A DNA stretch of 32,000 bases from Zygophlyctis sp. KS116 (Eukaryota > Fungi > Chytridiomycota), in NCBI GenBank assembly GCA_054661495.1, contig BAAFSQ010000054.1, forward strand, positions 1-32,000, read 5' to 3'. How positions within the stretch are numbered: the stretch's first letter is position 1; each line of letters starts with the position of its first letter. Of the stretch, positions 1,217 through 25,630 are shown one piece after another. A program made the position numbers and the translations under genes. The notes beneath the pieces were generated by a model. The model was given only the letters and a program-made list of their open reading frames with translations, had not been told where the DNA came from and made no database searches.

Positions 1217-2014
1217 ATGAATCAGGAAATGGTCTCTCTTGATGATGCATCAGCCGCTGATTCTGATGAATGTTTATCCAACTCTGATGCATCCAACTCT
1301 AATGAATCAATCTCCCAAACCAGTGATTTTAACGATCCATTTTCTATTCTATCTGCCTCTGATTTGAAAAAACATTCTGCAGCGCTTGAGTCATCGGGAG
1401 TAGTATATCTATCCCGAATCCCTCCATTCATGAAGCCAACTAAATTGCGATCTCTATTGGCAAAATATGGAAAGTTGGGAAGAATTTATTTAGCGCCAGA
1501 AGATGCTAAAATCACTGCTAAAAGGAAAAAGTACAAACACAATAAGAGAATTAATTATGTTGAAGGATGGGTGGAATTCCTAGATAAAAAGGTTGCTAGA
1601 AGAACTGCTGCTCATTTAAATAACAATATCATTGGTGGTAAAAAACGATCTTATTATCATGATGATATTTGGATAATGAAATATCTTCCTAAATTTAAAT
1701 GGAATCATTTAACAGAACAGATTGCTTATGAATTAGTAATTTTTTATTTGATCTCTAATCTGTAGAAAGTCAAGGATCAGAAATTAAAGACTGAACTTTC
1801 TCAGACTAGAAGAGAAAATAAAATCTACATGAATAATGTAGAAAAGGCAAAGATGATTAATAGCATCAAGGAAAAGAAATCTGCTAAAATTGAAGATTAT
1901 GATCAGTCTTCTTTATTAAAAAAGACTAGACAATTCAAACAACGTCCAGTCTTGGATGGAAAAAGGCCAGATAAAGATAAAACACTAAATATTCTATCGA
2001 GAATCTTTTCTTGA
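1217..2014 (+). CDS. ESF2: Pre-rRNA processing protein ESF2/ABT1 (RRM), intron 1736-1765
   Basis: GVVYLSRIPPFMKP...GRIYLAPE...EGWVEF...IGGKKRSYYHDDIWIMKYLPKFKWNHLTEQIAYE is the Esf2 signature. A 30-nt intron joins it to the 1829-2014 ORF frame. Confidence 0.93.
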
Positions 2015-2231
2015 TAGGAATTTGAAGGAATTTAATTCTTTCCATTTGTTATCATTTGCAGAATCTAGAATTTTAATAAAAACAAGAAACCATTTTCTGG
2101 ATGCTGGTAATTGGCATTGATTGGAATGTCTGGTAGTGGAATAGAATCTTTTCCATTTAATGAATTATAAGAATGCAGATAGGGAATATATCTAGAGTCC
2201 TAAAATGAGTTTTAATAATTACTTTGCTCAT
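1994..2231 (-). CDS. Small 62-aa protein, APC13/Swm1-like (anaphase-promoting complex subunit 13); introns 2200-2222 and 2065-2090; absent from ORF track
   Basis: ATG AGC AAA|gt..ag(23 nt)|GAC...G|gt..ag(26 nt)|AT...TAG gives MSKDSRYIPYLHSYNSLNGKDSIPLPDIPINANYQHPENDSANDNKWKELNSFKFLSRKDSR. The N-terminal (K/R)DS, the D-x-I/L-P core and the C-terminal KWxE/DL resemble Apc13. Confidence 0.72.
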
Positions 2232-2243
2232 TTCTGCCGCTTA

Positions 2244-3233
2244 ATGAAATTTCCAACCCGACTATTGTCTGATCGCCGCAAAAGATTAAAGGCGTTTGAT
2301 TATAATGGATTGTATGAAAGAGCTGTTGCAAGTCAAAAATGGGTCGGTGCTCATGTATCGGCTGCTGGTGGGCCTGCAAATGCAATTGTAAATGCTAGCT
2401 TTATCGGGTAAAAAGTGTAATTAACAAAAGTGCCACATCGTTCGGACTCTTTTTAAGTTCGCAGAGGAAATGGGATAGTAAACAGTACTCTGATGATCAG
2501 ATCAAGGATTTTATTGATAGAATAGAGGAATTTGGATATTCTCATATTTTACCTCATGGATCGTACTTGGTTAATTTAGCAAGTCCGGAACAAGAGACTA
2601 GAAGAAAATCTCTTGATTGGTTTCTACAAGATCTTAAAAAATGTGAATCTTTAGGGATTAAATTATACAATTTTCATCCTGGGAGTTGTACTAGTACCGG
2701 TACTAAAGATGAATCACTGCAATATATATCATATGCTTTAAATAAGGCTCATTTGGAAACTAGAAATGTAATTACAGTCTTGGAAAATTCAGCCGGACAA
2801 GGATTTAGTCTTGGTGCAAAATTTGAAGAATTAAAGGCAATCATTGACTCTGTAGATGAAAAATCAAGAGTCGGAGTATGTCTTGATACTTGTCATTTGT
2901 TTGCTGCAGGTTATGTACTTTTTACACGCTTAATCCTAGGATATTTCAACCAGTGAATCTTTTGAAAGAGTAATGAAGGAATTTGAATCAGTAATTGGAC
3001 TAGAATATCTCATGGCGATTCATTTAAATGATTCTAAAGAAGAATTAGGATCTAGAAAAGATCGTCATGAAAATATAGGAAAAGGTAAAATTGGACTGGA
3101 ATGTTTCAAATATCTCATGAATGATTATAGATTTAACAATATGCCTCTAATCCTGGAAACACCTCTTGGAAAATCACAAGATTTCTCTATTTGGGAAAAG
3201 GAAATTGATCTCTTGTACAATTTAATAAATTGA
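2244..3233 (+). CDS. APN1: AP endonuclease 1 (endonuclease IV family); introns 2408-2430, 2915-2939; start 2244 (2205 alternative)
   Basis: Motifs GAHVSAAGG, PHGSYLVNL, NFHPG, LENSAG, VCLDTCHLFAAGY/D, HLNDSK, DRHENIG, LILETP (tri-Zn EndoIV ligands). Confidence 0.95.
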
Positions 3234-3262
3234 TTCTTTTATTTATTAATGCATGCTTAATC

Positions 3263-4059
3263 TTAAAATCTTTCCTTCATTCTTGCACTGATAGATCTTA
3301 ATTTTGAATAAACCTTTCCAGGAGATGATCCTCTAATCAATGCAACCATTGAATCTCTTGCAATTTTTATATTTTGAAATGATCCTAGAATATGAATTTT
3401 AGTATCTGCAACAACAACTCTAGTTCTGGTTGTATTCTCAATTGTATATTTTGTTTTTCCATCTTTTCCTACAAGTCTTGCTATAGCTCTAGAAAGATTA
3501 TCACCGGCTAGAGTTCGAACATCTTTAATCTCAAAACTATCAACAAATAAATCATCTAATCTTAGTAATGCCATTGCATCCTATAAATATTAAAAAGAGA
3601 AAAATACCTCCAAATCGAATCCTAATCCATATGCTCTTACAAAATCTGCACCTTTTTGTAATGCACCAATATCCTCTGTTTGAGCGCAAGACCTCAATTC
3701 AACAGATTTACTTCTAATATTCATTCGGACTTGCAATTTCATGTGCTCCACCAATGGCGTATAAATTTTTAACCAATCCTTCTTCAATGGAGTCATTCGA
3801 TGTGGGGGGATGGGGACTCTTCTGGTTTCTATTTTACCATCCTAATGTATTAGACCATAAAGACTCAGAAATATGAATTATCATCAATGGCTTGTTCAGT
3901 GCTTGACTCTTAAAATCTCATCATTGTCCGTTTAAAGTAATTTACCTTTAATTCACTTGGATGGATTGGATCAAAAGATGGCCTGGATGATGCATCAATT
4001 GGCATCTCATCTAGCGGTTCAAATTTAGAGGCATCAATGGTCTCCATAATAGTTTCCAT
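3263..4059 (-). CDS. PNO1: Pre-rRNA processing KH protein PNO1/DIM2; introns 3842-3945 (104 nt) and 3581-3607
   Basis: [27 protein letters not shown]...[21 protein letters not shown]...[19 protein letters not shown]...GSSPGKVY is the Pno1 signature. Confidence 0.95.
3861..3929 (-). ncRNA. Intronic box C/D snoRNA, snR66-like (guide for LSU rRNA Um2417, yeast numbering)
   Basis: Minus strand: GGAC stem, ATGATGA (C), guide AGAGTCAAGC, A, CTGA (D'), TGATGA (C'), CTGA (D), GTCT stem. The guide is complementary to the conserved LSU sequence GCUUGACUCU, and the D'+5 rule points to the second U. Confidence 0.85.
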
Positions 4060-4127
4060 TGCGGTTTTTCAGTAAAAAAAAACTGCGGAACCCTAACTAT
4101 AAAAATTTTACAAATTCCTTGTTTTTA

Positions 4128-6335
4128 TTAGTATGGGGAATTCACAATGTCCGACCTACTTTTAAGCATTTTGGTAGGAGTTTGCAAATTAGATTTATGA
4201 ATCATCTGAACATCTGAAGGAAGAGCAACTATTATTGAGCGATCTTGTCCAAACTTGAAGGAATCAGCAACAACTTCTTCTGCGTATTTCTTGATCTGAT
4301 AATCATACAAATGTCCAGCCTTAACTCTACGGAAATTCCAGGTTATAACATACGGTCCAGTTGAAGTAATAATGGTCTTTTCTTCATCTTGTCCGGTAGA
4401 AAACTTTGCAACGGTAAAGTTTATCTGGTGATTCATTAATGCTGCATGTTCTGGTTTAAGCTGAAGTCTTCTAGGAACTGGCTTCTTGTCTCCCATACTT
4501 TTTGTAAATCCTGTAGATGAAGACTCTTTAAGTTCAGTGTTTAAGATTAACAAGTAAGTTTTGCAAGTTGCTAATAACCATTTTCCACTTTCAGTAGTGT
4601 CAATTCCAATAATAGGATCTAATTTCTTAAATTCTTAAATTTACCTCCAAGTCCTGGAAGATGGGTTTTGGCTCTAATGTTTAACTTATTATAAAGTCTG
4701 ATATCTCCCTTCTTAGAGGCAACTGCTAATTCTCCTTTACCAGTTGTAACTGCACAACTAAAATCAGCTTTTGTAGCATATTGTTTGGATTCATTGACAA
4801 CACGCTTGGTTCCAGATAAACGAGGATCAATCCGAAATATAGAGTTTTTATTGATTCCAATAATGGTTTTTTGTGGAGTAAGCTGAGCGTATTTAGAGTC
4901 TGGGATCATTTCATGAACAGGTACATTTTCATCAACTTCCCACTCTAAAATAAGCTTTTATAATTTACCTTCCACAACTTTACCAGTTGTCAAATCCATC
5001 TTAAAGATTTTCTTATCATTCTTGTTATCCATCATTAACATTGAAGTGTCTTGTTCATGCAATAAGACTTTTCTAGGAGAAAAATATTCTCCTTTTAGAG
5101 TCTTTATATGAGGAATCATTGTTTGGAATTTTAATTGTTCGTCATCAGAATGATTAAAAACCCCAATTTTATCTCCACGGAAAACATAAGAACGATCACC
5201 TTTATATCCCACTGTTAAATTTGAATTCTGTTCAGGCATATTAAGTCCGGAAAAATCATTTTTTTCTACTTCCATATCACCACGCAAGTTTCTTGGAGCA
5301 ATTACTTCTTCTTCTTCCTCTTCTTCTTCAAAAGCATCCTCCATAACAGCATCTTCTTCATAAGCAGAAGTTATCCAGTCTTGATCAGCCTTTGAAACCT
5401 TTGCAAAGTCTTCCTTATTCAAAGTTTCATAAATACACTTTGAAAACATTGACTTGAATTCTTCAAAATCACTTGTAGAATTAAACTTTAAAGAGAATGA
5501 GAATGGACCTTTATCATCCTTGAACCAATTCCAAACAAATGAATTATGTTCCTTATTAAATGTAGGACTTGTATTAATAGCAATTTCTTGAGATAATATA
5601 GTATTTTCTATTGTTAAACACTTGAATTTACCTGATTTATCTATAAAAATCCCAAAGCTATATTTCCCTAAAGCCAAAAGACACACATCCACTTTATCAT
5701 GTAACCTCACAAACTGATCAAATCGCGCATCATACAAATAAAGCTCTGATTTAAGAGACATTAATTCTGAACCAGATTTCTGAATGATTATATAACTCTT
5801 GGATTCAAATTCATCTTCATTTTTTTCTACCAATGTTTCATTAGATTTAGAAAAATTACTATTTTTTTCAATAGTTCCCTTGTAATTAACTCTATAAACT
5901 TACTTTAACAAACTGATCAAACTCTTCCTGTGAATCGGGGAGCCTAGAGTATTGACGCTGAAACGCACATTGCATAAAGAACTGATAAAATTCACTTATA
6001 CTCTTTTTAGAGACTTGTAAAGTATCAGGAATAAATTGAAAAGAATCAATTCCTGAAGCCGATTCCAAATCTTTCCAAGTAAACTCTGTCGACATTTTTA
6101 GTTTTTCATCAATCAAAAAGCATTTTTCATCAAGAGTGTCTAAACATGAAATTATTAACTGGAACTGATGTTCTGCATCAGTCGAAAGGATTGATGCACT
6201 GGCCCTGGTAAAAACAACTATTGAATCGGCTTCTGCTGGACGTTTATGAACCAATTGTCCGCAAGCAAGTTGTGCCAGACATGCAGGTCCAGATTTTCCA
6301 AAAACAATATCAGAAATCTTTGTAAACAAATTCAT
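4128..6335 (-). CDS. VID27: VID27 (vacuolar import and degradation 27); introns 5879-5903, probable 5608-5631, 4945-4968, 4619-4644
   Basis: NSNLTVGYKGDRSYVFRGDKIGVF, FRIDPRLSG, AVASKKGDIRLY, AKTHLPGLG/DPIIGIDTT..GKWLLATCKTYLL, LQLKPEH and IITSTGPYVITWNF are Vid27 C-terminal motifs. Confidence 0.92.
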
Positions 6336-6373
6336 TTCTCAACGCAATTTCAACTTATCGGTCAGTGCCAAGG
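6039..6373. repeat. Direct repeat copy 1 (~335 bp; VID27 5' exon portion plus 38 bp upstream)
   Basis: Identical to 7674-8008 (offset 1635) except one substitution seen (ctctGtcgac vs ctctCtcgac). Confidence 0.97.
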
Positions 6374-6473
6374 GCGTTTGTACGGAGGTATAGATCGGAC
6401 ATACTCACACTCTTGGCAATCCAACACTCACATAACACGATTTGTCGACACAATCAATTTGAAACCATAGTGT

Positions 6474-7211
6474 TTATTTTTCATCATTTTTTCCAAACAC
6501 AGTATTTTCTTGATTCTCCAACACTCGGGAAACACTGTTAGAAGCTTCAAATAGACCATCAGCCAACTTTGATTGAGTAGGTATAAAGTTCAACTCAATT
6601 TTCACAGACTTTCCAGCTTGAGTTTTAGAAAAAGCCTTGATCTGATCCATCGTGCGAGTATTAACAACTTCAGCGATTCTTTTCCAATTTCCCCAACCAC
6701 ATTGCTGTACACCAGCTTTAAAAAGGACTACTTCAGAAGGCATCCACTTGCCAGAATGGTTTATACCCTGACATTCAGGTTCCTCAAGGCAATCAAACTT
6801 GCGCTTTTCTGATTTAGCATACAACTTTAGTTCCAAAGTAAGAATATCAGATTCTGATGATACATCCTCATATGCGAAAATGAGTTCTTCTTGACTACCT
6901 ATAATTTCGCCCGTATTTGGAATAGTTAGAACACATTTGAAATCAGGGTTCCAGGCTTCAACTCTTGACTGTAATTCAGCGAATGACTTTAATGGCTTCA
7001 ACTTTCTAGTAAGAGATGTCTCTCCAGTTTTCAATTCTACGACAATCCGCTTGAATCTTTTTGATACCTCCTTTATGACTTCAAATTTCCCAGTTACGGA
7101 AATAATAGCTTTTTCCAATTTGTTTGCATACGCTTGCCCATCAGATGATTCTTTAAAAAAAATGTTAGACCCCTGAGGAAGTTGCTCAACAACAGTAATA
7201 TCATTTTTCAT
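6474..7211 (-). CDS. Intronless 245-aa protein: putative ubiquitin-like/PB1-like domain plus a single SANT/Myb HTH domain
   Basis: GKWMPSEVVLFKAGVQQCGWGNWKRIAEVVNTRTMDQIKAF is a clear SANT/Myb repeat. The middle region (RIVVELKTG...SFAELQSRV...GEIIGSQEELIFAYE...LTLEL) follows a PB1/beta-grasp pattern (inference). Confidence 0.8.
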   Translation of the reverse strand: MKNDITVVEQLPQGSNIFFKESSDGQAYANKLEKAIISVTGKFEVIKEVSKRFKRIVVELKTGETSLTRKLKPLKSFAELQSRVEAWNPDFKCVLTIPNTGEIIGSQEELIFAYEDVSSESDILTLELKLYAKSEKRKFDCLEEPECQGINHSGKWMPSEVVLFKAGVQQCGWGNWKRIAEVVNTRTMDQIKAFSKTQAGKSVKIELNFIPTQSKLADGLFEASNSVSRVLENQENTVFGKNDEK

Positions 7212-7228
7212 TTTTCAGTTTTTTTCGG

Positions 7229-7310
7229 AGGGAGTCTGGCCAGTCCGGGTAGTCCGATAGTCCGATAGTCGGGGAAAGACATTTTACTACTCTCTACTAC
7301 CAGACCCCCC
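7229..7310. repeat. Short tandem/inverted repeats upstream of the Myb gene (TAGTCCGA-like x3-4; GGGAGTCTGG...CCAGACCCCC)
   Basis: cagtccgggtagtccgatagtccgatagtcggg, flanked by an imperfect inverted repeat. CTACTACC(A/G)GAC recurs at ~7294 and ~7408. Confidence 0.7.
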
Positions 7311-7565
7311 TTTAAGCAGCGTTGCTATTTTCAGATTTTTCCAGGGATATTCAGGGGAAATTATTGATCTATACTTAGTTGCATCTTCTACTTTCCAATC
7401 AGGGGTGCTACTACCGGACATCCCCTCAGGTCGCGTAGCAATCGATATGTTTTGGTTCTAGAGATCCTTTCTTGGATCAATTCGGCGCCAGAGTCCAGCT
7501 ACCTACAATTTCAGGCAATTAGATCCTTTTGAGTAATTAGATACAACTGCCCTTAATATGAAAAG

Positions 7566-8008
7566 ATCATACAAATGTCCAGATTGATTTAAGTCGGCAG
7601 GAATTTCAGGTAATTAGTAGATATGGTCCAGTTGAATTCATAAAGTTCCTTTTCATCATCTTGTCCAGTAGAAAAAAGAATCAATTCCTGAAGCCGATTC
7701 CAAATCTTTCCAAGTAAACTCTCTCGACATTTTTAGTTTTTCATCAATCAAAAAGCATTTTTCATCAAGAGTGTCTAAACATGAAATTATTAACTGGAAC
7801 TGATGTTCTGCATCAGTCGAAAGGATTGATGCACTGGCCCTGGTAAAAACAACTATTGAATCGGCTTCTGCTGGACGTTTATGAACCAATTGTCCGCAAG
7901 CAAGTTGTGCCAGACATGCAGGTCCAGATTTTCCAAAAACAATATCAGAAATCTTTGTAAACAAATTCATTTCTCAACGCAATTTCAACTTATCGGTCAG
8001 TGCCAAGG
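7566..8008 (-). pseudogene. Internally deleted VID27 copy: near-identical 5' part (7674-8008) fused to a degenerate 3' fragment (7566-7673, homologous to ~4302-4403)
   Basis: The 7656-7970 ORF repeats the first ~100 aa of VID27 and then stops. The adjacent blocks atcatacaaatgtccag, ggtccagttgaa and catcttgtccagtagaaaa align with the last VID27 exon with many substitutions and indels. Confidence 0.88.
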
Positions 8009-8039
8009 CTAGTACGGAGGCGTACAACGGTCCTGAACG

Positions 8040-8085
8040 GCGGCATCTATTGCGGCATCCTGACTATAAAAGGCATAATGCCGCA
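8040..8085 (+). promoter_or_regulatory. TATA box (8065-8071) flanked by inverted repeat TGCGGCAT/ATGCCGCA, with a third GCGGCAT copy
   Basis: gcggcat 8040-8046; tgcggcat 8051-8058; tataaaa 8065-8071; atgccgca 8078-8085; ATG at 8112. Confidence 0.55.
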
Positions 8086-8111
8086 CACTTTCTTTAAAAA
8101 ATTTAATCAAC

Positions 8112-8873
8112 ATGATCTTTTCAATTGCATTGCTAGCCATTCTAAGTTCAATCATGCCTGATGTGGCTGCTTATGAAATGAGTGTCATGTCCAGACAGTT
8201 TTATTACTTGGGCCTTGCAAACCTCGAGTCTACTACAAACATGCGACAAGTTCAATTTACATTTGGCTCTTACTATAGAGATTCATTCAATGTCTATCCG
8301 GGATCGGCAAATGCATTTACAATTTACGAAAATAACGTTGGTCTTCTTGTTAGTCAAGATATAAGCCCAAGGATTTCAATCAGATATAACGATAATGAAC
8401 ATGATACTTATAGAACCAACTGTTATGACTCTGTCGATGGGACAGATGTAATTTTGGAGTTTGAAGAACCATCCTCTGGAGAAGATTATAGACTTGCTTA
8501 TCGCTGCTGGAATATACGTGAATATAGACCAACATACCATTCTAATTACATAGATCCTCGGACGATTGTAATGAAATATCAGGATAATCTGCGTTGGTAT
8601 CATCGTCCTTCATCAGAAAGAAGAAGCTTGTTGGATATTGGAAAGTTTGGTACCTTGGGATTGAATCAAACTTGTAAGCCTTCTAGTGGGAATCCCAATC
8701 CTTGCAAAAGTCCATATTATTGTGCTTTGTTGGCAAACTCTCTCCCGGATGCTCAATATAAGTGCCTGGAGGCAGTTACCAAACCAAACTCTGCATGTTC
8801 CAGCACAAAACTCTGCATTTATCCCTTAACATGTAAGGTCTCAACTTCTGGATCAAAAGTTTGCCAAAGATAA
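8112..8873 (+). CDS. Intronless secreted protein (253 aa), unknown function; signal peptide, beta-rich domain, dibasic site, C-terminal 8-Cys double module
   Basis: Hydrophobic N-terminus MIFSIALLAILSSIMPDVAA; SSERR potential Kex2 site; CKPSSGNPNPCKSPYYC...KC and CSSTKLCIYPLTC...VC. Confidence 0.8.
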   Translation: MIFSIALLAILSSIMPDVAAYEMSVMSRQFYYLGLANLESTTNMRQVQFTFGSYYRDSFNVYPGSANAFTIYENNVGLLVSQDISPRISIRYNDNEHDTYRTNCYDSVDGTDVILEFEEPSSGEDYRLAYRCWNIREYRPTYHSNYIDPRTIVMKYQDNLRWYHRPSSERRSLLDIGKFGTLGLNQTCKPSSGNPNPCKSPYYCALLANSLPDAQYKCLEAVTKPNSACSSTKLCIYPLTCKVSTSGSKVCQR

Positions 8874-8928
8874 CTGTGAAATCTGATTAAATAAAAGAAT
8901 ATTTTTTCAATTAACTTGATTTGACAAA

Positions 8929-11900
8929 CTAGTTAATAGTGGCCAACAACCATTCAAAAAATATCTTTGAGGATTCAGGATCAGCAATCAAATCAGTAAG
9001 ATCCCCTCCGTATCCATATCCCTGACTTGTATCCAAAGATTTAATCAAGCATTCAACAAGAGAGGCGTTTGGATTCAAGTATTTCTAAAATTTAGTTAAA
9101 AAAACTTACTAGATCGACTAGTTTCTGATCTTCACAAAAGAATGAAATAAATGTTTTCAAGATTGAGTTCCAAGTATCAGTGATTTTTGCAATAAAAGTG
9201 CTATCAGGAACTTGAGATGATCTTTGTAATGCGGCTAATAATGCTTTTGCTTTTTCTAAAAGTGATTGTAGAGTCGATTTGGGTACAAGTGACCTTGAAT
9301 TAATTATTGTTTGATCAGAGGCACAGAAATAAAGTTTATACATATTAGCCTGATTCATTGGTGATTCTTCGGTTTTATTTTGGCGAGTCTCTAGCCACTG
9401 AATGCAATAAAAGTCTGCTGGGATCTGACTTTCCTCAAGTGAACTTGGATCTAATCCCCATTTGTAATCTGAATCTGCAAGTGATAATAATTGGCCAAGT
9501 CTGTATTGACAAGCGATTTCCCAAGGGTCGGTGACTGGTTGGTAAGGATTTAGTAGTTCTTCCTCAAGAATACAAACTATTTCAAAAATATGATGTTGAG
9601 AAACATTCATTTCTGGAATAGCTTGAAGAATATCCGAGTATTTTAACACGTTTTCCAAAACATCGTTCTCTAGAGGATTGGGAAGAAGCTGCGCGTTAGC
9701 TGAGGGGTAGCTTCTGCAGTTAAATAGATCCAAATCATATAAAGTTGTTTGAGGAATGTTTTCTACCTTCAGATGGAATGGAAGCGTCTTTTTAAGTTTA
9801 TAATGCGCTCGAACCATTGATGACTTAGTTGCTAAGTAAAGCCATTTTGTTGGGCGTATATTATGAAGTACGTCAATTGATGAAATAAGCAAAAGGCCTT
9901 CCCTAATTTGACCATAAGAAAATGAACTTTCCTGCAGGACTTTAGAAAGAAATACGATCAGGTCTTGTTTAGATTCTGCAAGATTTCCTGGATCTAGTTG
10001 CTGGTGCAACTGAGATAAATCAACTAAATTGCGGACTTTCAACAGCATATAATTTCTACATAGTCCTTTTGAACATTCAAAGCTACTGAAAAGCTTTTGA
10101 ATTTCGATGAATAATGGCTGAATACTGTCCAGTTCTGATATTAAGCGAACGATTAAAAATTGTTTTATACTGAGTCTAAGTATGTCCTCCTTTTTTGTTG
10201 GAAAAGCTTTGGCAATCGATACTAATTCGGAGAGGGATTCATGATTGGCCTTATTATTATGGTCGTACATAAGCTCCAAAGCAGTAGAATATGCTTCCAT
10301 ATTATGTTTATGTATATATTGCAACCATTCAGCTGGAGGTGGTAATGTACCAAAATTCTCCGACTTATTTGAAACAGATTCCAGAGAATAAAATACTGCC
10401 GCTTTTAATTTCATACCAATCGATTCTGCTTCTTTTCGAGCGGTCTGAGCCATGTGATTTGCAACATCAAAATATCTTAGCGATAAAAATCCTCTTATTG
10501 TTTTCTCCAAGATCATAAATCGAAGATGCGGTAAACTCATAAACCCGTATTCAATTGTTTGAAGACTACGATTATTAGCCAAGTATGTATGAATCCCTTC
10601 CATTGCTGTAAAATACCTAATTATTAAATCGTTAATAAAATACCACTTAATTCCAATTCCAATATTTTTTTCTAGTACGCATAAATCACCAAGAAGCAAA
10701 TACCAGCAAATTTCTGCTCTATCATAAAAAAGTTTTACTGTCCCTTTATTTTGAAGTTTCTGAGAATATAATTTCTTCATTTTTTCTAGAATAAATGACT
10801 TTGCATCTTGAATTCCTTGTTCGGTGGTACGCTCCCTCGTCCGCAAAAAATCCAGAATAAATCTGATTTTCGTGATTGCTATTAGCTCTTGAGAATAAAT
10901 GCCGCCTAAACTTTCTACTTGATCTATATCTAACAATTCTGTAGTAACTGTTTTGGTAAGTATTGTTTCTAATTCTATCGGATATATGGAAGATATTGAA
11001 TCGCCTATATTTTTCATATTCTTAAGAACTGAAAAAGCCTGGTCAGAAAGATTGAGGTTTTGCAAAGCTTGTATCTCTGCTGATCGATTGATTGATGTGT
11101 AAATGGAAGAGAAATTAGCCCATTTAGTAATGTGCTTTATATAGCAGTTCAAAGGGAATACTAAATATGATAATTGAGAGGAGTTGCAATAATTAATCAT
11201 CCATAAAATCTGATCCATTATTAAATGAGAATCGTATTTGTAGATCATAGAGAATTTTTCCAGGATATCTGCAAAATATTCTGACTCCCACAGAGAAAAT
11301 TCCACATATGTAGATGGTCTTGAAGGAATAATATTAAACGGTGCTAATAAACAACATACAGCAAGCAAAATAATCTGGTTTTTAGATTCATCACTTTTAT
11401 AATGCTGAGAATAAGCCAGTTTAGCAACGATAAGACCCATAAAAATACTAAGTTTTACATTTTTCGTTACTTGCAATATTTTAATGGAAGTCTGATAAAT
11501 CCCTAGTATTTTATCCACGTTAGCATCCCAAGAGAACAAATTTGGCCAGTTGGTTAGTATATTCTCCTTTTTAAATACAACTTCGATACATTTCATCCAA
11601 TTTTTACCAGCATCCTTCGTTTTTTTATAGCTTATTAAAGTATCCCCTAGCTCATTCATTGCCGTAATCTCGTTTAAAAGACATCCTTCTTCCTCCGCTT
11701 TCAAAAACGAATTGGCATACATATCAATTCGCTTCTGTCCTTGCAAACATCTGGCATAATGAAGAATAGTATGACTATTTCCAATCCTAGTGTGAATATC
11801 ATTCCGATAAGATAGAAAAAGTTGGCAGCCATAAAAAATATGATTTAACCTATCTAATAAAAGATTAAGACGATGTGATTTTTTTGATAAATTCATCATC

Positions 11901-14900
11901 TCTAAAGTTGTATGAAGAAAGTTAACAATCAGTTTAATATCCATTCTTTCAGCATGCATCAACCCACTGCCGTCCTTGTAAAAAATATTCCAAGAATAGT
12001 CGTAAATATCTTCCCTTGATTCTACTGGAAATCGCCTATTATATTTCGGAGCATTCATGTATTTTAAGGAAACAGGCGGTACAGCCTTTATAGAGTTTTC
12101 CATGACGAATTCTACTGTTTGGAAAAGGTCGCAAATATCATCTGCAATCAAATAAAACCACTTTGAAAGACGATCTTTCCAAATATCAGAATCAAATACC
12201 CGAAGAGATGCCAAATATTGATATGAACTGTGAATCTGCTGAACGCCTGAAAGAAGTTGGATCCATGAACCATTTCTTGCAGCTAGATTTATTCCAAATG
12301 TGTAGTATTGAAAAGCATCTTTAATTGTGTTTAAAAGTACAGTAGGAATAGTAATAATCTTTTCGTCATCTTTAAGTTCGTCATTCTTTGGATTTTTTAT
12401 CGTATTGATTCTTGCAAAGTCGGCTTCAAGAGTCTCCTTCTTTACAAATCCTTTTTGTATGAGATCCCTTTTCAAAATTCCAAATAAGCTCTCTGCATGA
12501 ATAAGAGATATATCTATTCTTGAATACGCTTCGAATCTGAGAACAAAAGCAAGTCGCCGCCTTATTCTGAATCGGTACCATAATGATGATAAGTACCTGT
12601 CCAATACTTTCACAGCTTTATCCATTTTTATTTTCATATCCGGAGCTAATCCTTCTAAATACTGCTGTTTGAAAGTAATTTTTCTCCTTCTATAAGCTAT
12701 ATAGCTATTCTTATTTTCGGAATCGTCTAAGCCGGTTTCCAGTACCTTATTGCCACTATAGCTAATTCTTCTTGCTAGAGATGGTCTATTTTCAGGTGAA
12801 ACAGATCTTTGTTTTCTCTCACGGCTAGAAGAAGATTCTCTATCTGTAGAGGTTCCTGCATTTTTCGAAGCCCCGTTACGTTTTGCTTGAGGCGCATGTT
12901 GTCCAGCACGCCGAGAACGGCCCCTTTTTTCTTGTCTAAAGTGAGATCATATAATGTCTTACTTAATATCTGGTTCGGATTGCTTATTAATTTTAATTGG
13001 CGGTTTTCTTTTAATTGCTGCTTCCCATTTCTGATATTCTTCGGGTGATAGATCGATCGTACCCAAAATTAAGCTTCTTTTGCTACACCAATCTTCAATT
13101 TCTCCACAAAGTTTTGAAGCCTGCTCAAAACTCTTTGTTGATATAGCCCATCCTGCTATTTTAGATGCAATTTCTATGAAACGGGGATGGTTACGAAATT
13201 TAAGTACTTCATGAAAAACAATTTCAGCGGATTGAGAATTTTGGTAAAGAATTTGGATATCTTTCATTGTTGGCTGTGAATCCAAGGACCTTCTCGATAA
13301 TTCTTTTCGAAGTGTATCTGAAACAAGAGAGTTTTCCAAAGAGAATGGAAGCTTAAAACAGCAAATAACAATCTTTGAGTCTAAATATTCACAGAATTGA
13401 TCAAGCTGGGTCCTTTTAGTAGTATAACCTGCTTTCCAGCGATTTGATACAGCTAAATATTCATGATGAAGAAATTCCTGACTATTGTATAAGTTTTTCA
13501 AATTAGAATCCGGGGAAACTATAGATCTACCATATTTTTCCTCAGTATTGATTTTGATTTTAGGATCGCTTAAAACACAAAAGCGATGCACTAGCTCCAA
13601 TATTTCAGTACAAATCTTCAAAACTTGTTCATACATGTGAAGTTTTGTAAGAAGTTTGATCAAATGTAATGTGATGGGGATTACAAAATCGATAATCCCT
13701 TGAGTTCGGCTATTTTCGAGAGAAGAAATTGATTTAATCATACTTGAATGAAGAAATATTAAAATTGGGATAAATTCTGTAGTTTCTAGATTAGTTTTGA
13801 GAAATGATTCAATATGATTGAAGCAGCATACCGCACCCTTAAGCTCAAATGACCGATTATCAGTGAGCTTACAAATATTCACTGCAACAAGTAGCCTTTC
13901 AATCGCTCGTAACCGAAAATCAATTAAGCAGTGATACTGAGAATGATCTTTTAGGTTCTCCAAATATGAGCCCAGAATAGGAAGATATTCCTCATTATTA
14001 ATATGGTAAATAACTCTGACAAAATTATCCAGCAATATTTGATTTTCTCTCTCGATATTTGCCTGCTTAAGCATCGCTGGCTTTTTAGGTAGAGCATTTT
14101 CAATCGAGTTTTGAAATGGCGCATCAACAAAATATGACCACAAAAACTTGAGTCCATTTAATCCTAAACTTAAATAGCCAAATGAAGGCGCAATAAGACA
14201 GAAATTTTCCCAGCACAAAACTAAAGGTAATATATTCCCAGTAATTATGTTTATTCGATCCGTTGCCTTTGATGAATTATCGTTAGAATCATATAAAGTG
14301 CCACTTATCTCATAGAAAGTGTTTTCCTTTAATCCACTTATTAATAAAACCTCGTGATTATTAGCTCCTATCAATACAGCCTCCCCAGTTCCTGAAAATT
14401 TAGTATTTGTTATAGAAACCATCTTATTTACAGATTTTTTTCCGCAAAATAATTTAACAGTAGTTCTGTTACTGTTTGAGCGCAATTTGAGAGCGATACA
14501 GTTATGGCTTCTATATGCTATACTGAGCTGATTTATATTATTTTCCATATTTTTTCGCTTCAGATATTCTTCGTATTCCACAGATTGTTTTAAGTACTTG
14601 TACGATAGGATTATACTTTTCTTTCTGATGTCAATATGATAATGATTAGCAGTAGTGGCAAAAACTTGCAAAAATATTGCCCGATGAGTATAACTTTCTC
14701 CACAAACTAACTTCAGAAGCCGATCTACATCCGTTGCATCAAAAGGTGGAGAGATAGTAATCTTCTTTTGAGTCAGCCTAAAATATTGCCCTTCTTTATT
14801 TGTTACTTCTTCCATTGTTTTTAAATGATTTAATTTTATGAAGCAGCGATAATATCCCTGCAAAAGATCGACATGATGACAAGCTAAAGATTTCGTTAGC

Positions 14901-17280
14901 ATTTTCCCTTGATGTTTAGTCTCGATTGAATTTTCCTCTAATAAAGAATTGATAAATGGTGTTCCATTTTCACCTAATCGAAGTTGAAGCAGTTTAATTC
15001 CCTCTATAGCGCTTAACAGAATTTCTATTGCATCGTTATATTGACCTTTCAGTTCTAAAAATACAGCCAATGCAGAACTTATACTTACTGCTAAGTTTGA
15101 ATGATTGCATATTTGTGATGAAATTACTTGAGCAGCATTAATTGCTAAGATAATAATATTCTCTAAACAAGGCGAAAAATTAGTACTGGACGGATCCAAA
15201 TCAACAAAATATGGCTCAGTAAATTTCCATAAGATATATGATGAATCCGCTAACAAATTGCAAATTTCAGACCGGCTTCTATTATCCTCCAAGCAGAGAC
15301 AAAGTTCTTTAAGAAATCCAATCAATGATTTCTCAACAGATTTACCGACTTTTTGCCTTCGTTTCTTCAAATCGACAAGAGATTTTGTAATATCTTGCTG
15401 AGAATATTCAAAACCTACCATTCTTTCGGAATGGAATGAGATATCAAAGTTAATACATTCGCTCCGCAGCGAGAATTCACGTATAGACGCAAAGTCATTA
15501 TTATTCATTGATACTCGAAGGAAATATGGCCAATATTCTTGCACATAAAGATACCGTGAGAAACTAAGTAAATCTTTCAAATCAAACCGATCTAAATTAG
15601 CAGGCTTTGGAATACTTTGGATTGCATTTAATTTTCCTTTTTTGCATTCCATAATCTTTTTAGTCGGTATATGACCATCTAATGATCCTGCGGATGAACT
15701 AAGCAGATGAAATCCAAGATTGATTAATTGTTTAATCATGTTTTCCAAGATAGGCTCTGAACATTTTTCGTATGTAAAAAGTGAATGCCCATCTACCCCT
15801 AAATTACAAAGAGCAGAATTAATAGCTGCCAATTTTCCACGATCATCTGTAAACATCTGTAATCTGCTGATTAGCTGGAAGAATGACTTCTTTTTTAATT
15901 TTATTTCTTCGGCATTCTCCTGTTTTTCACGTCGTCCAGATCTACGCTTCGGGTCTTCTACTATAGCCTCCTTCTTTTCAGATACTCCTGAATCTTCAAA
16001 CTCAATCGTTTCGAAAACTTTTTCGACCACGATATTGTTTTCGGAAACGTAAGATTCAGTCATTTTCTTTAGATTGTATGTCAAGTTTTCCTGAAAAGAT
16101 AGCGCACATGAATCATAAGTAATATTGTAGAGAGATCTATAGGCGAACTTTCCGCATAGACGAACTATCTGTCCTTTTAAAATCTCTTTTAGTTGCATCT
16201 GCGTTTTTGTAACCGTTGTGGAACACGTTGGGCTTAATCGAGTATCTTCTCCTATGTCACCATGATCAGACAAATGATGATAGGTGGGTTCTTGGATAGT
16301 TCCAGTATACATAATTAAAGTTTGTGCCCGAACTTCACAACCGAACAATAACAGGCTCATATCATACAGCGCTGAATGAATATCTTCCTGTAATTCCTTG
16401 GGTAAAATTTCAGAATATTTTGCTTCTTTTTCCAGTTGTTCGATATATTTGATCATGGTAATAGTTTCCAATATCATATTATTTGCTTGTTTTATTTGAC
16501 AAATATTGAGTAATGCATTATAGATCAATTTAATATTATCTACAATCCACGGAATGAATTCTGCACCCATAAGCTCTATATTATTTTTCAAATAATTCAG
16601 ACTTTTTGCTAAATATTCAGCAGTCTAATTTGTAAAATCAGTTAAAATCTTACCAGAGAATAGTTTTTGTTTTCATAGAGATGATTGCAAATGTTCCTGA
16701 TATGATAACTCCCAGTTAACATTAGTCCAGCAAGTTGCTCTTTTTTATTACATTCATCAACTATTTCAATTAATTCAGATAACAAGTTCTCCACAGATTT
16801 AATAGCGATCGGACTTCTTATAAGCGGATCCATTGAAAGAATCTGAATGTAGTTAACCATGACACGTCCATACTTTGCTCGTATCATCAACTTCTCTATT
16901 TCAATTCCTTGGATTTGATTACCATCCAGTATTTTGGAAAAACAATGCAAGTTTGCTAAATTATGAAATCCTTTGGATTGCAAAAGCTCTTCTCCAGATT
17001 CAATCAATCTAGTAGCATATAATAGTGGCGGTAAATAACTCCCATACTTATTCCATGCATCAAGAAATAGATCGATGTTTAGTAACTTTTGATGATTTGA
17101 TGATGTATTAAACTTGATGGCCTTGAGAGAAAATGTTAAATCATTCTCAAACATCATCAGCAGAGACTTTTGGCTGATCCTACTCAAGACTGGATCAAAT
17201 GCTTTCGGATCAGTCAAATCAGACACTGAATTTAAATTCGGATGCTGTTGAAGAGTCTTTATTGGCTTTAATTTCCCCAT
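8929..17280 (-). CDS. CFAP54: Cilia- and flagella-associated protein 54 (~2700 aa); introns 16625-16653, 12936-12962, 12690-12745, probable 10617-10643, 9085-9109
   Basis: The N-terminal LFLDAWNKYGSYLP.LLYATRLIESGEELL...LANLHCFSKIL resembles the CFAP54 N-terminal domain. Very large helical protein; three long ORFs are joined in frame by GT-AG introns. Confidence 0.8.
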
Positions 17281-17321
17281 ATGTGATTTAAATTTAAATA
17301 TCCCACTTGGTGACGTAACAA

Positions 17322-18066
17322 CTATTCACATGTTTGAGTGCCCATTTCCGTAGTTTCTTCTGTCTCATAATATCCATTATCTTCATCTGGAGGATCCCAC
17401 AAGTGTAATTTACGACGCCAATTTCTTACTAATCCATCCCATGATCTTTTCGAACATTTATTCTTCTTATCCGGAGTTACTGGATCCTGACGCCCTCGTT
17501 TATGGAACGGTACCAGAGAATTATATCTCGCATAACCAATAGTATTCTAATATTATTTTTACTATTGATACCTTTCCATAATCAATCTGTTTTTGTCTCT
17601 GATGTAGCCTTCTTTCCTGTGCCGCCTCGCAAGATCCTATATATCCAGTAGATGACTGAGTAAGAAAAGATTCTGCCAATGAACGATTTTCTGCTGATTC
17701 GACAGACTCTGGAATACTTTGAATTTCAACTTCCAAGTCCTGTTCATCTTCCTGTATTGCTAAACTTCGCAGATCTCGTAGCAAGGATTCACCAAGAGAA
17801 AGGTGGTTTTCATTACTTTCATCACTAGTTGGCCGGCGATAGATACGTGGGTTTCTTACATTAAGTGAGCAATGTGTGGGACTCTCTCTTTTCTTCTTGG
17901 TTGCTGTGGGTGGAGTGTAAAGTTCCCAATCTTCTTCATACTCGTAATATGTGTTGTCCGAAATAGTCTTGCATTTCACTGGGCATAAAAATAATAATGT
18001 ACCTGGTGTAGTTACAATATTGTCATATTCATTCAAGTAATAATTATCTGTTGCGGCAGTGAGCAT
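17322..18066 (-). CDS. SLBP: Histone RNA hairpin (stem-loop) binding protein; intron 17547-17571
   Basis: Spliced: RRLHQRQKQIDYGK/NTIGYARYNSLVP...DPVTPDKKNKCSKRSWDGLVRNWRRKLHLWDPP matches the SLBP RNA-binding domain (RQKQIxYGKNT, TPxK, SxRxWD, WRxxLHxWDPP). The start codon is uncertain (first ATG used). Confidence 0.92.
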
Positions 18067-18233
18067 TGATGGCGAGAGAGGAATAGAAACACTCGAACGA
18101 TTCAAAAATTATTTTCTTCGCGTCTGAAGTTTTATCAATTGGTGATTTAATCAATCAGTCCAGTCAACAGCCAGGACTCAAATCGATCTTGCATTATCAG
18201 TGATCAAATCAATCTCATTATCATAAATTTCCG

Positions 18234-18262
18234 AATGACATCAATGACCTGTTGATGTCATT
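18234..18262. promoter_or_regulatory. Perfect 11-bp inverted repeat 15 nt upstream of the EFHC1 ATG
   Basis: AATGACATCAA-tgacctg-TTGATGTCATT. Confidence 0.55.
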
Positions 18263-18277
18263 ACCCTTTCTAAAAAA

Positions 18278-20283
18278 ATGAATAAAGGTATTCCATTTCT
18301 TCCTGGAAACTCATTTCAAAATGTCAAGGTATTCTATGAATAATATTAAAAAGATTAGAAGCATGATTTTAGAAAGCCTCATTCGCTAGGATACAAAAAT
18401 GGTTATCCGACTCAGATCACTCCAAAACTAGGGATCGGACTTGAGGAATTAAATATCGGCGGAACACCATCAATTGAAGAATTGGCAGAATCAGCAGTGT
18501 CTAATGCATCAATCACTTATGGAGATAAACAGTTTCACACTAGAACAAAGGCTCCTCGATTTGTTCCGTCCCATGTTGCCTTTGATAAAGTTGTACGAAA
18601 TCAAAAGTATTAATGATCATAGGTCTTAAGATTTGATGCGTACTTTAAAGAAACAGTGCATGAATCTACAGAACAATTTCATCTTCGGAAAGTTTTAATT
18701 CATTATTTCTTAGAAGATGATTCAATTGCTGTTGTAGAACCACCAGTTGAAAATAGCGGAATACTGCAAGGAGTATTAATAAAACGTCAACGCCTTCCAA
18801 AAAATTCTACAGAATTTTACTGTATTAAAGATTTTAATTTGGGAATCAATATTACTTTTTATGGAAAAACTTTTAGAATAGTATCTTGTGATGAATTTAC
18901 AGAGGTAAGAAGTAATGGTTGAAAATTAGCATTACCTGATGGAAACTGAAGGAATTCAATTGAATCCTCCAGAAAAAATGCCAGTCGATAATTATATTTT
19001 GCAACGTGTTCGACCTGCAAGAGTTCATAATGTGAAGGGAGAAAGAAACGATCATTTACGTCGCTTTTTGGAAAATGATCGTAAAGTTCTTCGATTTTTC
19101 TGTATCTGGGACGATCGTGACTCTATGTATGGAGAACTTCGTGAATTTGTAATTAGAGACATTCTTAATCTAGGTTATTCATTATTATTTAGTAGATGAT
19201 AGTGTAGAAGTCCGTGAAGTTCAAAAACCAAACAACGGAAGAGATCCATTCCCCATACTTCTTAAACGAACTAAACTTACAAAATCCTTTTCGGGTGATA
19301 ATCATGACACTGCAAAATATGTTTGGAATGATTTTCAAATAGGAGCTGTGATTGATGTATTGGGCCGTAAATTTCTAATGTATTTTTAAAAGAGTCTTAT
19401 CATAGTCGTGATTGTGATGAATACACAAAGAAATTCTTTTCAGAACATACTGGTGTCTCTGTAGATGACATTAAAGCCATCCCATTAGAAAAAGATGAAC
19501 CTGCTAAATTAGAACATGAACTTCCACCATATAATGGATTCGGATCTGTTGAAGACTCTTTAGGCTCTTGCAAATACTTGGTTTTACAGCCTCCTAAAAA
19601 AGACTTTATAAAAATGCTTGAAAATGAGCATAAAGTCCTTCGATTTGTTGCTAGACTAGATTCTAAACATAAAGAAGACAGGGACAGAAGATTTGTTATT
19701 AGTTATAGATTAGCAGATGATACAATGACTATTTATGAGCCTCCTCAAAGGTATTATCTTTACTCTAAATTATAGAAATACAGGAATTCTTGGTGGTAAA
19801 TTTAATGAAAGAACTAGACACTTAAAGCCTGGATCATCTCTTTTATCACCTTCTGGACCAGTATACTATTCAACCGAAGATCTTTACGTCGGAGGAGAAA
19901 TCGAAGTCTGTTCTCATCACTTTGTACTTTTAGATGCTGATGAATATGTATTCAATTATATGGAATCTGATCCAGTAAAATATAAACAGAGTAATAAGGC
20001 GGCTGTTTTTGATAAAATGGCTAGATTTATTATTTCTGAACCAGGACATGACTTGAAGAGGAGCTTGAAACAACTATTTAGTAAATTAGATCCATCTGGA
20101 TCACATTTAATTGATCGTATTAAAGCGATTGAAGCAGCCCGATCTCTCAAATTACCATTATCGGATCATGTAATAATACTATAATTTAATATTTAGGAAT
20201 TGGTTACTCTTTTAAGAATTTTTGAAGATTCTCCACGCCGCCTAAATTACGTCAAATTGCTATCAGCCCTTGATGAATTCTAA
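18278..20283 (+). CDS. EFHC1: EFHC1/RIB72 axonemal microtubule inner protein (3 DM10 domains plus degenerate EF hand); 7 introns of 25-30 nt
   Basis: N-terminal [10 protein letters not shown]; [33 protein letters not shown]; DRKVLRF..WDD; KVLRFVARL...[21 protein letters not shown]...[13 protein letters not shown]. Confidence 0.94.
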
Positions 20284-23407: not shown

Positions 23408-25630
23408 TGTTTTGTTTTCTTTTTTGGCAACAAACAAACCGTGATATGTTTATCAACATAAGTCCACGAATTCTCTGATTCAAAAATAAGAGGCCGTTTA
23501 ATATCAGTGAAGTTTATACGGCGATTAGAATCAAACTGGGATAAAATCTTACTGCAATCCTTCGAAGTATGCTGATTATCAGACATAACACATTCCTTCT
23601 TCAAATCACAATGTTGATTTACTCCGACATGATCAAAAGAATGATTAGCTAGCTCGTATAACCCATCATCTTGCTTTCGAGATGTTATCACAGGGGAAGA
23701 TCTCATTTTCTTGATCCTTGAGGCCTTTGCGTTATGCATGTCACGGTTCATGTGGGTCATTTGAAGTAAAAGAGTATCTCTATCAGCTACCAACTCCAAA
23801 ATAGATTTACGGTAATGTTCAATGACCTCTATATTTGCAGCTTCAGGAGCGAAAGTAGAGTTTTTAGAATTCTGATGAAGTAATTCCTCATTTAATTCAT
23901 AAACTTGAAGGGATAAATCAGAATTGATTCTTTCTAATGCATCGATTCTGGCATCTAGGTTAGCATTGTCTTGTTCTATATATTTAAGAGATAGATACTC
24001 ATTTTCCAAAAGTTCAGCTTCCATTTTTGCATCAAAACGTTGCGTTTGTGTATTTTCTGAAACAACTGTAGGATTTTCTAACAATTAGATAAAATGCATA
24101 CCGAATAAATTGCTGTTTTCAAGAATTTGTAAAATTGATTCAGTCTCCAACTCTAAGGGAGATCGAGGTGACATACTGGTCTTAGTAGTTTTGAAACGGG
24201 ATAGTTTGACAGACTTTTCAAATTTTTGAACACAAAGTAAATCACCATCTCCGTCTTTAAAAGATTCAACCTTTCCAAAAGTATCATTTTCTTCAACTGT
24301 GAAATTTTCATACTTTTCTGATATGATCATATCTTCAGGTGATTGAAGGGGAGAAACATCATCTGCTTTCATTACATGCTCTTTCAAATCGGTAAAAGAC
24401 GTTTGAGTAAGAAATTCGTGAGATGAAGGATATGCCTGAGTTGAACAACTTTTGGTATTTGCTGTATTGGACTGTGTAAAAACTGTTTTGTTGCTAATAG
24501 CTGTTTGTGTCTCCCCTGAGTGTGCTTCTACAGATTCAGTCTGCAAAGATACAGACTCCCCTGGCTTGATGTCCATATCATGATTTTGCTTATCTGTTTC
24601 TGTAAATGAGTCACTTGTTTCCAATGCTGAAAAGGCTAAAGCACGCGAAATAAGTAAATCGTCAGGATACGGACCATCAGTCTGCTGCAAAGTTTCATTT
24701 AATTCTTTGACAATCTCTATATTGGCCTGAACTGATATCTCTTCATACTCGGTTTCTGTGGTTTGAATCATATGCTCGTGAGTAGATGGATGTGCTTGTG
24801 AAGAGAAACTATTCTTTTCAACTGGCAAAACTTGAGTAAAAGATTCCACAACAGCAGGCTTTTGTATTTCTTCTGTTTGTGTCTCCCCTGAGAGTGCTTC
24901 TACAGAGTCAGTCTGCAAAGATACAGACTCCCCTGGTTTAATGTCCATATCATGATTTTGCTTATCTGTTTCTGTAAATGAGTCACTTGTTTCCAATGCT
25001 GAAAAGGCTAAAGCACGCGAAATAAGTAAATCGTCAGGATACGGACCATCAGTCTGCTGCAAAGTTTCATTTAATTCTTTGACAATCTCTATATTGGCCT
25101 GAACTGATATCTCTTCATACTCGGTTTCTGTGGTTTGAATCATATGCTCGTGAGTAGATGGATGTGCTTGTGAAGAGAAACTATTCTTTTCAACTGGTAA
25201 AACTTGAGTGTATGATTCCTTGAAATTAAATTTTTCCGTTTGAGTTTCTAATCATTAAATTCCATTAGTATACCAATATTTGTCAGTTTATCATATGAAG
25301 CAGCCTCATTATTCTGAAATTTAAATTCCCCTAATTGAGATAAATCAAAATCTATCAAATCTGTTTGTATTGAACCATCACAAGTATCAAATGCATCCAT
25401 GTCTTCTACCGATAATTCATTAATAGCTTTTATGAGATCCGAAACTTGTTCCAATGATATCCCGATTTCAATTTGCACCCTCTCTCTAATTTGCCTCTCT
25501 TCATTAAGAGCTTTTGTTAGATTTTTGATCTGAAATTCAAGATCCTTTACATAAAGCCGCTCTATTTTTAAGTACTGTATAGATCACCTTGAGTCATAAT
25601 AGTAAGATCAGTCTCACTCCAATAGTTCAT
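23404..25630 (-). CDS. Coiled-coil protein with a long acidic disordered region rich in xQT motifs and a 124-aa internal duplication; introns 25562-25587, 25248-25273, 24078-24101; start uncertain
   Basis: Three ORFs join in frame through 24-26-nt introns. N- and C-terminal coiled coils; SIQTD, ETQTE, MIQTT, SLQTD, ETQTA and LTQTS motifs. Confidence 0.7.
24501..25209. repeat. Intragenic tandem duplication, period 372 bp (24501-24837 vs 24873-25209)
   Basis: Two ~337-bp copies with about five substitutions; frame preserved (124 codons). Confidence 0.96.

Follow-up and report, generated by a model that had tools for sequence, protein, structure and literature searches.

The question raised by this locus is how a compact fungal genome came to hold about 2.6 kb of extra DNA, including two intronless genes and a second copy of the start of VID27, between VID27 and a neighboring CFAP54-like gene. 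The locus lies in a 32,000-nt stretch of DNA from the chytrid Zygophlyctis sp. KS116 (contig BAAFSQ010000054.1, C54:1-32000 of an assembly of 12.7 Mb in 1175 contigs); the whole stretch that was analyzed is called the window here, and the extra DNA is called the island. A preliminary description of the sequence had proposed that the island could have arisen by integration of a 1635-bp circle, or by invasion of a targeted element similar to the yeast WHO elements, and that its two genes, one for a Myb-type regulator and one for a secreted cysteine-rich protein, might form a mobile regulator and toxin cassette. With a confidence only slightly better than even, we favor a different answer, namely that duplication and repair of DNA within this lineage produced the island, which is not a self-moving element.

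The island is built around a direct repeat of the VID27 5' end. The two repeat copies (A and A', Table 1) aligned ungapped with a single mismatch (6088/7723) at an offset of exactly 1635, and each comprised 38 nt 5' of the VID27 ATG and codons 1-99, with the ATGs at 6335 and 7970 on the minus strand. Both copies matched the Pfam domain VID27_N. They enclose the Myb gene as had been described, and the A-X-A geometry, in which the repeat flanks an insert (X), is real. In the copy-1 gene, successive open reading frames (ORFs) matched the VID27_N, VID27_PH, and VID27 C-terminal domains, and the comparison of the window with strain L013, in which the multi-exon genes VID27 and CFAP54 were handled exon by exon, revealed purifying selection on VID27 (nonsynonymous to synonymous ratio, omega, 0.07-0.09). 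The duplicated VID27 pieces were confirmed and extend further than had been noticed, as copy 2 also contains about 110 nt of a downstream exon, designated P'.

An empty site, which had been predicted for relatives, was found in L014. In this more distant relative, in which VID27 exon 1 has 72% amino acid identity, the CFAP54 C-terminal exons and stop codon are followed by 27 nt and then the VID27 ATG. In the window, the distance from the CFAP54-like stop (8929-8931) to the VID27 ATG is 2593 nt, and the spacers have a GC content of 0.41-0.45 versus 0.348 window-wide, in agreement with the reported gap of ~2.55 kb with GC-richer spacers. Thus, the whole 2.6 kb is extra relative to the L014 state, and the interval is a lineage-specific insertion zone. 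In another relative (L015:1-274), a GC-rich array of GCTAGGTC-like short repeats, and not CFAP54, lies upstream of VID27, indicating that what lies at this intergenic position differs among members of the clade.

The structure is also supported by other assemblies. L013, a 22.5-kb scaffold of a strain ~96% identical to the window, is colinear with window positions 1281-18837 and contains both repeat copies; L011 contains the copy-2 junction and then a path from the Myb gene through repeat copy 1 to the remaining VID27. The possibility, raised earlier, that the repeat is an artefact was thereby checked against two further assemblies, both of which hold the integrated path. Among Logan contigs of three DNA runs, the repeat formed a separate contig with a depth close to the sum of those of its neighbors (593 in run X2, with neighbors at 323 and 198-320), and the contig of the Myb unit had 1.2-1.5 times the depth of the flanks. 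In run X3, a lake metagenome, contigs matched the window up to either 6953 or 7967, the latter position lying immediately beyond the copy-2 ATG, before turning into unrelated sequence, which points to a further strain or species with another context for the Myb gene and the VID27-like start.

The sequence between the two VID27 starts is a patchwork in the order exon-4 scrap, filler, copia scrap, Myb promoter and gene, and repeat scrap. The match of the copia scrap to C162 and C48 falls within an ORF with an RVT_2 domain, and contigs at this scrap extended into copia with a depth of ~1760-1880x versus ~320x for their neighbors in run X2, i.e., five to six times deeper. The repeat scrap gave 82-84% matches to four contigs (C594, C234, C694, and C541), which have up to 1.66 kb in common at 93-98% identity, and an isolated scrap of 84 nt on C9 matched the Myb upstream region at 80%. 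Donors for VID27 exon 4, copia pol, and the dispersed repeat family are thus extant in the genome, and the C9 scrap alone represents a Myb donor. No further copies of island parts were found in the 12.7-Mb assembly except the scraps' own families, and no residual VID27 similarity above shuffled controls was detected in the filler and the upstream regions. The motif CGGAGG occurs at three places in the island (Table 1), which are three of its four plus-strand occurrences in the window, and all three closely precede a VID27 or Myb start when read in gene orientation.

Copy 2 shows how the repeat has evolved since its formation. P' is joined out of frame to copy 2 directly after codon 99, and the P'-A' junction sits in a run of A's common to both parents, with a 2-nt overlap. 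This fusion of codon 99 to an exon-4 piece with only 76% identity to its parent makes copy 2 a chimeric VID27 pseudogene whose two parts appear to differ in age. Nine positions distinguish the window from L013, yet at each of these the two copies of a strain have the same base, indicating gene conversion between the two VID27 starts, which accounts for the apparent difference in age. P' is ~10% diverged between the strains and 24% diverged from its parent; because P' diverged while the core was homogenized, the duplication is older than the strain split. Weak similarity runs ~20 nt upstream past the identical core, and the region between copy 2 and the Cys-rich gene has weak residual similarity to the sequence upstream of copy 1. 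Concerted evolution of a gene and a neighboring pseudogene by gene conversion is an ordinary process, and the island resembles it in that the copies are more alike within a strain than between strains and in the sharp limits of the converted tract where homology ends. The unusual point is that the converted pseudo-copy keeps a putative working promoter and is covered by contigs of an RNA library. In this metatranscriptome library (X19), which has thin coverage and whose strain differs by ~3%, contigs spanned the P'-A' junction (7554-7820) and three contigs lay over the Cys-rich gene (8119-8849), with none on the spacers or the Myb gene. Since the spacers carry no X19 contigs, these contigs probably derive from RNA and not from stray DNA, and the upstream VID27 copy appears to be transcribed as a truncated pseudogene of 104 codons.

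From this anatomy we infer a history of duplication with filler. In the ancestor, no more than a few tens of bases would have separated the CFAP54 stop from VID27, and two additions would have followed, the secreted Cys-rich orphan gene and the A-X-A structure with a filler X of ~1.3 kb. X would have been stitched from pieces copied elsewhere, that is, the exon-4 scrap, the 164-nt filler, 43 nt of copia, the Myb gene with its proximal promoter, and the 62-nt repeat; the Myb piece would have been cut off ~16-22 nt past its stop codon. One complex event or a few template-switching events during replication or break repair, similar to microhomology-mediated break-induced replication (MMBIR) or fork stalling and template switching (FoSTeS), could have generated this structure by duplicating the VID27 start in tandem and placing templated insertions between the copies, leaving VID27 intact. 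What happened afterwards is visible in the data, with the 335-bp core homogenized by gene conversion, the Myb copy decaying, and the orphan gene retained. Recombination between the direct repeats, by unequal crossing-over or with pop-out of the 1635-bp unit, should also be possible, and the contig depth and one contig (L012, see below) hint at it.

MMBIR and FoSTeS are names for replication template switching with templated insertion. Chains of templated insertions have been described in cancer genomes (PMC7025897). As in templated insertion, the duplicated target segment of the island brackets the insert, which consists of short pieces from 1.6 kb away and from distant loci, possible microhomology is seen at the one readable junction, and no gene was destroyed. 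The island differs in being germline and fixed in a compact fungal genome, in including a whole promoter-bearing gene, and in the later homogenization of its arms, and a mechanism of this type is proposed for it from the structure of the product. The empty site and the three strain-level states would illustrate how such a genome gains and then loses genes with the flanking housekeeping genes undamaged: a duplicate is formed together with patchwork filler and is then homogenized by conversion, the secreted orphan gene is kept, and the gene for a DNA-binding protein decays.

Table 1. Features of the VID27-CFAP54 interval and its flanking genes in the window.
Feature	Position	Strand	Remarks
Functional VID27	4128..6335	-	ORF blocks 6335-5892, 5833-4958, 4909-4619, and 4553-4128, with short introns between
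Repeat copy 1 (A)	6039..6373	-	335 nt, one mismatch to 7674-8008; Logan repeat contig at about double depth
Spacer, Myb stop to VID27	6374..6473		62-nt dispersed-repeat scrap (6401-6461); CGGAGG at 6383
Myb/SANT gene, intronless	6474..7211	-	Intact ORF, 245 aa; PF00249, E=1.9e-9
Myb upstream region	7212..7358	-	Degenerate ~10-nt repeat; CGGAGG at 7226
Copia pol scrap (Ty1/copia)	7359..7401	- (sense)	43 nt, 98% identical to C162 and C48
Filler	7402..7565		164 nt, no other match in genome
Decayed VID27 exon-4 scrap (P')	7566..7675	-	Parent 4302-4403; 76% identity with indels
Repeat copy 2 (A')	7674..8008	-	Part of 104-aa truncated VID27_N ORF, 7656-7970
Divergent upstream region between VID27 pseudo-copy and Cys-rich gene	8009..8111		CGGAGG at 8015
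Orphan gene	8112..8873	+	253 aa, signal-peptide-like N-terminus; eight Cys in C-terminal 66 residues
CFAP54-like gene, last exon and stop	8929..9078	-	C-terminal exon alignable with L014

The Myb gene is the part of the island for which relatives are available. Its protein is predicted to consist of a beta-grasp-like middle part followed by one SANT/Myb domain, a prediction taken from secondary structure alone, as the structure model was of low confidence (predicted local distance difference test score, pLDDT, 47.5); a profile search of PDB with the protein returned SANT and TRF2 Myb domains only. The gene has 13 relatives in metagenomes (58-99% identity) and two distant paralogs within its own genome. 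Of the two genes described as orphan-like, the Cys-rich gene retains this status and the Myb gene loses it. The expected copies of the two genes elsewhere in the genome did not materialize, both being single-copy in the 12.7-Mb assembly. A further Myb-related sequence is the scrap at G000:C9:32622-32705 (L021:1501-1584), which comprises 12 nt upstream of the Myb start and 24 codons at 80-85% identity and lies ~250 nt from a scrap of a hAT dimerization domain. Full-length orthologs have 334-368 aa, and the window copy is without ~92 codons (276 nt) that form a coiled-coil-like region. Both L011 and L013 lack 6707-6774 (68 nt, part of the SANT domain), and L013 additionally lacks 6923-7255 (333 nt, start codon included). 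Homology to the relatives' loci stops 16-22 nt past the stop codon, where the relatives have at least 85 nt in common, and upstream it stops near 7229-7231. Judged by these deletions and limits, the window gene looks like a trimmed, decaying copy. A processed retrocopy was not supported, as there is no A-tract past the stop codon and upstream promoter-like sequence is included; the lack of introns is uninformative in this respect because the Myb orthologs are intronless everywhere. The C-terminal third of the Myb gene in L011 (L011:965-1190) was far more diverged from the window than the remaining contig (omega 1.5 overall), and several of its residues agreed with the distant ortholog L010 and not with the window. 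This part may be a mosaic or may have been converted by another Myb copy.

In several relatives, the Myb gene was located on contigs with identical ends. The ends of L043:1-1785 are identical over 127 nt and those of L044:1-1688 over 30 nt, and both contain the same 1658-nt unit with a Myb ortholog at 57% amino acid identity. As the two contigs come from different assemblies and have different start points, the unit is circular or tandem, two states that identical contig ends cannot distinguish. It consists of the Myb gene and 551 nt alone, with GGAGG repeats at 10-nt spacing, and was detected in two or three samples. In another sample, the two ends of L010:1-3622 overlap by 55 nt, so that the unit measures 3567 nt; at its join five GGAGG are followed by five CCTCC at 10-12-nt spacing, and 90 nt past the stop codon the Myb start recurs in inverted orientation over 36 nt (97% complementary). 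L026 likewise has an inverted copy of the Myb start downstream of the gene, and L027 contains two Myb copies 1744 nt apart. The inverted repeats of the relatives consist of the promoter and the first seven codons, with no defined outer ends and no target-site duplication (TSD). In L012, the region upstream of copy 1 (U), repeat A, and the scrap P' follow one another as they would in a circle or a second tandem unit; this contig ends in Illumina adapter, indicating thin coverage. Among JGI metagenome contigs, only one known Myb locus and one paralog-type locus were found, and IMG/VR gave none. The flanks of L010 gave only short weak matches for synteny in the window's genome. A hAT-like scrap in L010 and a site on C128 with a hAT domain match at 75% at the DNA level, and a Pfam search of the L010 ORFs gave no link to hAT.

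These units raise the possibility that the island derives from a small circular or tandem Myb element of ~1.65 kb in the chytrid clade, which, after capturing a VID27 fragment (the start and the exon-4 scrap), entered VID27 through a single homologous crossover and is now decaying. We consider this origin unlikely, though far from negligible. Campbell-type integration by a single crossover is known for integrating plasmids in fungi, and small nuclear plasmids include the yeast 2-micron circle and the Dictyostelium Ddp plasmids. The island is similar to such cases in that its direct repeat would equal the shared homology and its period of 1635 is near the unit sizes of the relatives, above all the 1658-nt units, which themselves resemble nuclear plasmids in that a DNA-binding protein gene is accompanied by phased short repeats and, in some cases, by inverted ones. 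The L027 pair, the GGAGG clusters, the L012 junctions, the depth excess of the unit, and a repeat depth close to unit plus flank also agree with integration. However, the window holds a trimmed piece of a unit, with no iteron cluster and with its downstream homology cut at 16-22 nt; the element would have had to capture a deleted VID27 fragment and the copia and repeat scraps by illegitimate events beforehand; and no separate Myb contig is present in the genome. Unlike nuclear plasmids, the relatives' units may be tandem arrays, and the Myb protein has no recognized replication or recombinase domain. The circle proposed earlier thus gains some support from the 1658- and 3567-nt units and from L012, and a clean integration does not agree with the exon-4, copia, and repeat scraps. 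For the relatives, a broader proposal is that Myb is the sole gene of an undescribed nuclear element of ~1.65 kb, circular or a self-amplifying tandem array, with putative binding repeats of phased GGAGG, which recombines into host genes and regenerates their ends; we regard this as doubtful. In that case the element would follow a size rule, which would account for the equal lengths of the VID27 deletion (1635-1637 nt) and the unit (1635 nt). Should the 1.66-kb units turn out to be genuine replicons or arrays that amplify, early-diverging fungi would have a new type of small element, and this Myb family, which in related freshwater fungi sits on circular or tandem units carrying phased repeats, is the testable lead most worth following. 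A related explanation is an assembly artefact, in which a single chromosomal VID27 start and a free 1635-bp circle sharing 335 bp were threaded together by the assembler. With a 335-bp repeat, the assembly graph would be identical for the integrated unit and for chromosome plus circle, the Logan contigs break at the repeat, and L012 is a circle-type path. Such an artefact is nevertheless very unlikely, because integrated paths occur in three assemblies (window, L011, and L013), parts of the unit's only gene are missing from L011 and L013, as is more readily expected of a relic in the chromosome than of a plasmid under maintenance, and the exon-4 scrap evolves like neutral chromosomal DNA. Several observations weigh against duplication and repair. 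The identical-end contigs and the path from U through A to P' fit a circular or tandem element at least as well, and the 1.2-1.5-fold depth of the Myb unit also fits such an element, although GC bias could explain it. Microhomology is readable at one junction only, the other donors being diverged, and the genome has no Myb donor locus beyond the 84-nt scrap. The VID27 segment absent from copy 2 (window 4404-6038) measures 1635 nt between the aligned blocks, or 1637 with the 2-nt overlap, which equals the repeat period, and the distance from the exon-4 scrap to its parent is 3272 nt (twice 1636); duplication with filler gives no explanation for the equality of deletion and period.

Elements that move by their own enzymes account for the island less well. 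WHO elements at FBA1 in Torulaspora and Lachancea encode an endonuclease and replace the 3' end of the host gene, where alleles are hyper-diverged (PMC7282813). A homing element of this kind that targets VID27, regenerates its 5' end at each invasion, and leaves the old 5' end behind would produce a geometry akin to the WHO clusters, with an intact host gene, adjoining cargo, and then a host-gene fragment, and it would agree with empty sites in related genomes such as L014. In the island, however, no nuclease or transposase domain was found by Pfam or by the PDB profile search of the Myb protein, which contains only SANT/Myb, and the other ORF encodes the secreted orphan protein. The duplicated end is the 5' end, it is not more diverged than exon 2 (synonymous divergence, dS, 0.095 for exon 1 versus 0.108 for exon 2, window versus L013), and the fragment left behind is kept identical to its parent by conversion and is not divergent. 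The exon-4 scrap has no place in this model, and the cargo is decaying in sister strains. A WHO-like origin, raised as one option before, is hardly tenable on these grounds. Capture and transport by a DNA transposon, through hAT alternative transposition or a Pack-type or Helitron-like element, would be in line with the at least 32 matches to the hAT dimerization domain in the genome, the position of the C9 Myb-start scrap near a hAT scrap, the hAT-like scrap of L010, the inverted Myb-start copies in L010 and L026, and the patchwork of gene fragments, which is typical of Pack-type elements. Against this, nothing was found that links the genomic hAT matches to the island, no meaningful terminal inverted repeats (TIRs) were detected in 6300-7700, no short direct repeats of the TSD type flank the Cys-rich gene or the whole island, no transposase lies in or around the island, the patchwork has no second copy in the genome, and the relatives' inverted repeats lack the outer ends and TSD of a transposon. 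This route is highly improbable. With no nuclease or transposase, no TIRs, no copies, and no excess of dS at the 5' end, the island was classified neither as a WHO-like element nor as a transposon, and duplication with repair is retained as the preferred origin.

The Cys-rich gene does not travel with the Myb gene. Its 253-aa ORF had no Pfam match, and word-indexed, exhaustive HMMER, and ESM Atlas searches yielded as its only relative the 94%-identical copy in L013; a candidate relative (P0018) was dismissed as a translated tandem DNA repeat. Omega was 0.44, indicating moderate constraint, and the Cys-rich C-terminal part showed just two conservative changes between the strains. The structure model was unusable (pLDDT 32.3). 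The gene sits outside the repeat-bracketed unit, is absent from the Myb units of the relatives, and is intact in L013, where the Myb gene is broken. The two cargo genes are therefore not one unit, and the idea of a regulator and toxin cassette is not supported.

The genes of the window are dense and have short introns, and its GC content is ~35%. The standard genetic code applies, as it gives ORFs of 1200-1300 aa; a ciliate or other alternative code was ruled out, the ciliate code giving overlapping nonsense. The window was present in freshwater and lake metagenome runs and in one organism-labeled run. The CFAP54-like gene was recognized by a match of Pfam CFAP54_N to its N-terminal ORF (16645-17325). 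The ORF listing showed no third long ORF in the island besides those of 245 and 253 aa and the VID27_N pieces, and searches of the GC-rich spacers for RNA genes with Rfam (at gathering thresholds and at E<=1) and ARAGORN gave nothing credible. Outside the island, another direct repeat, also nearly perfect (at least 300 nt, 99% identity, spacing 372), was observed at 24501-25172 within the ORF 24088-25251 on the minus strand. A Pfam search of this ORF gave nothing clear, and the repeat is presumably a recent internal tandem duplication.

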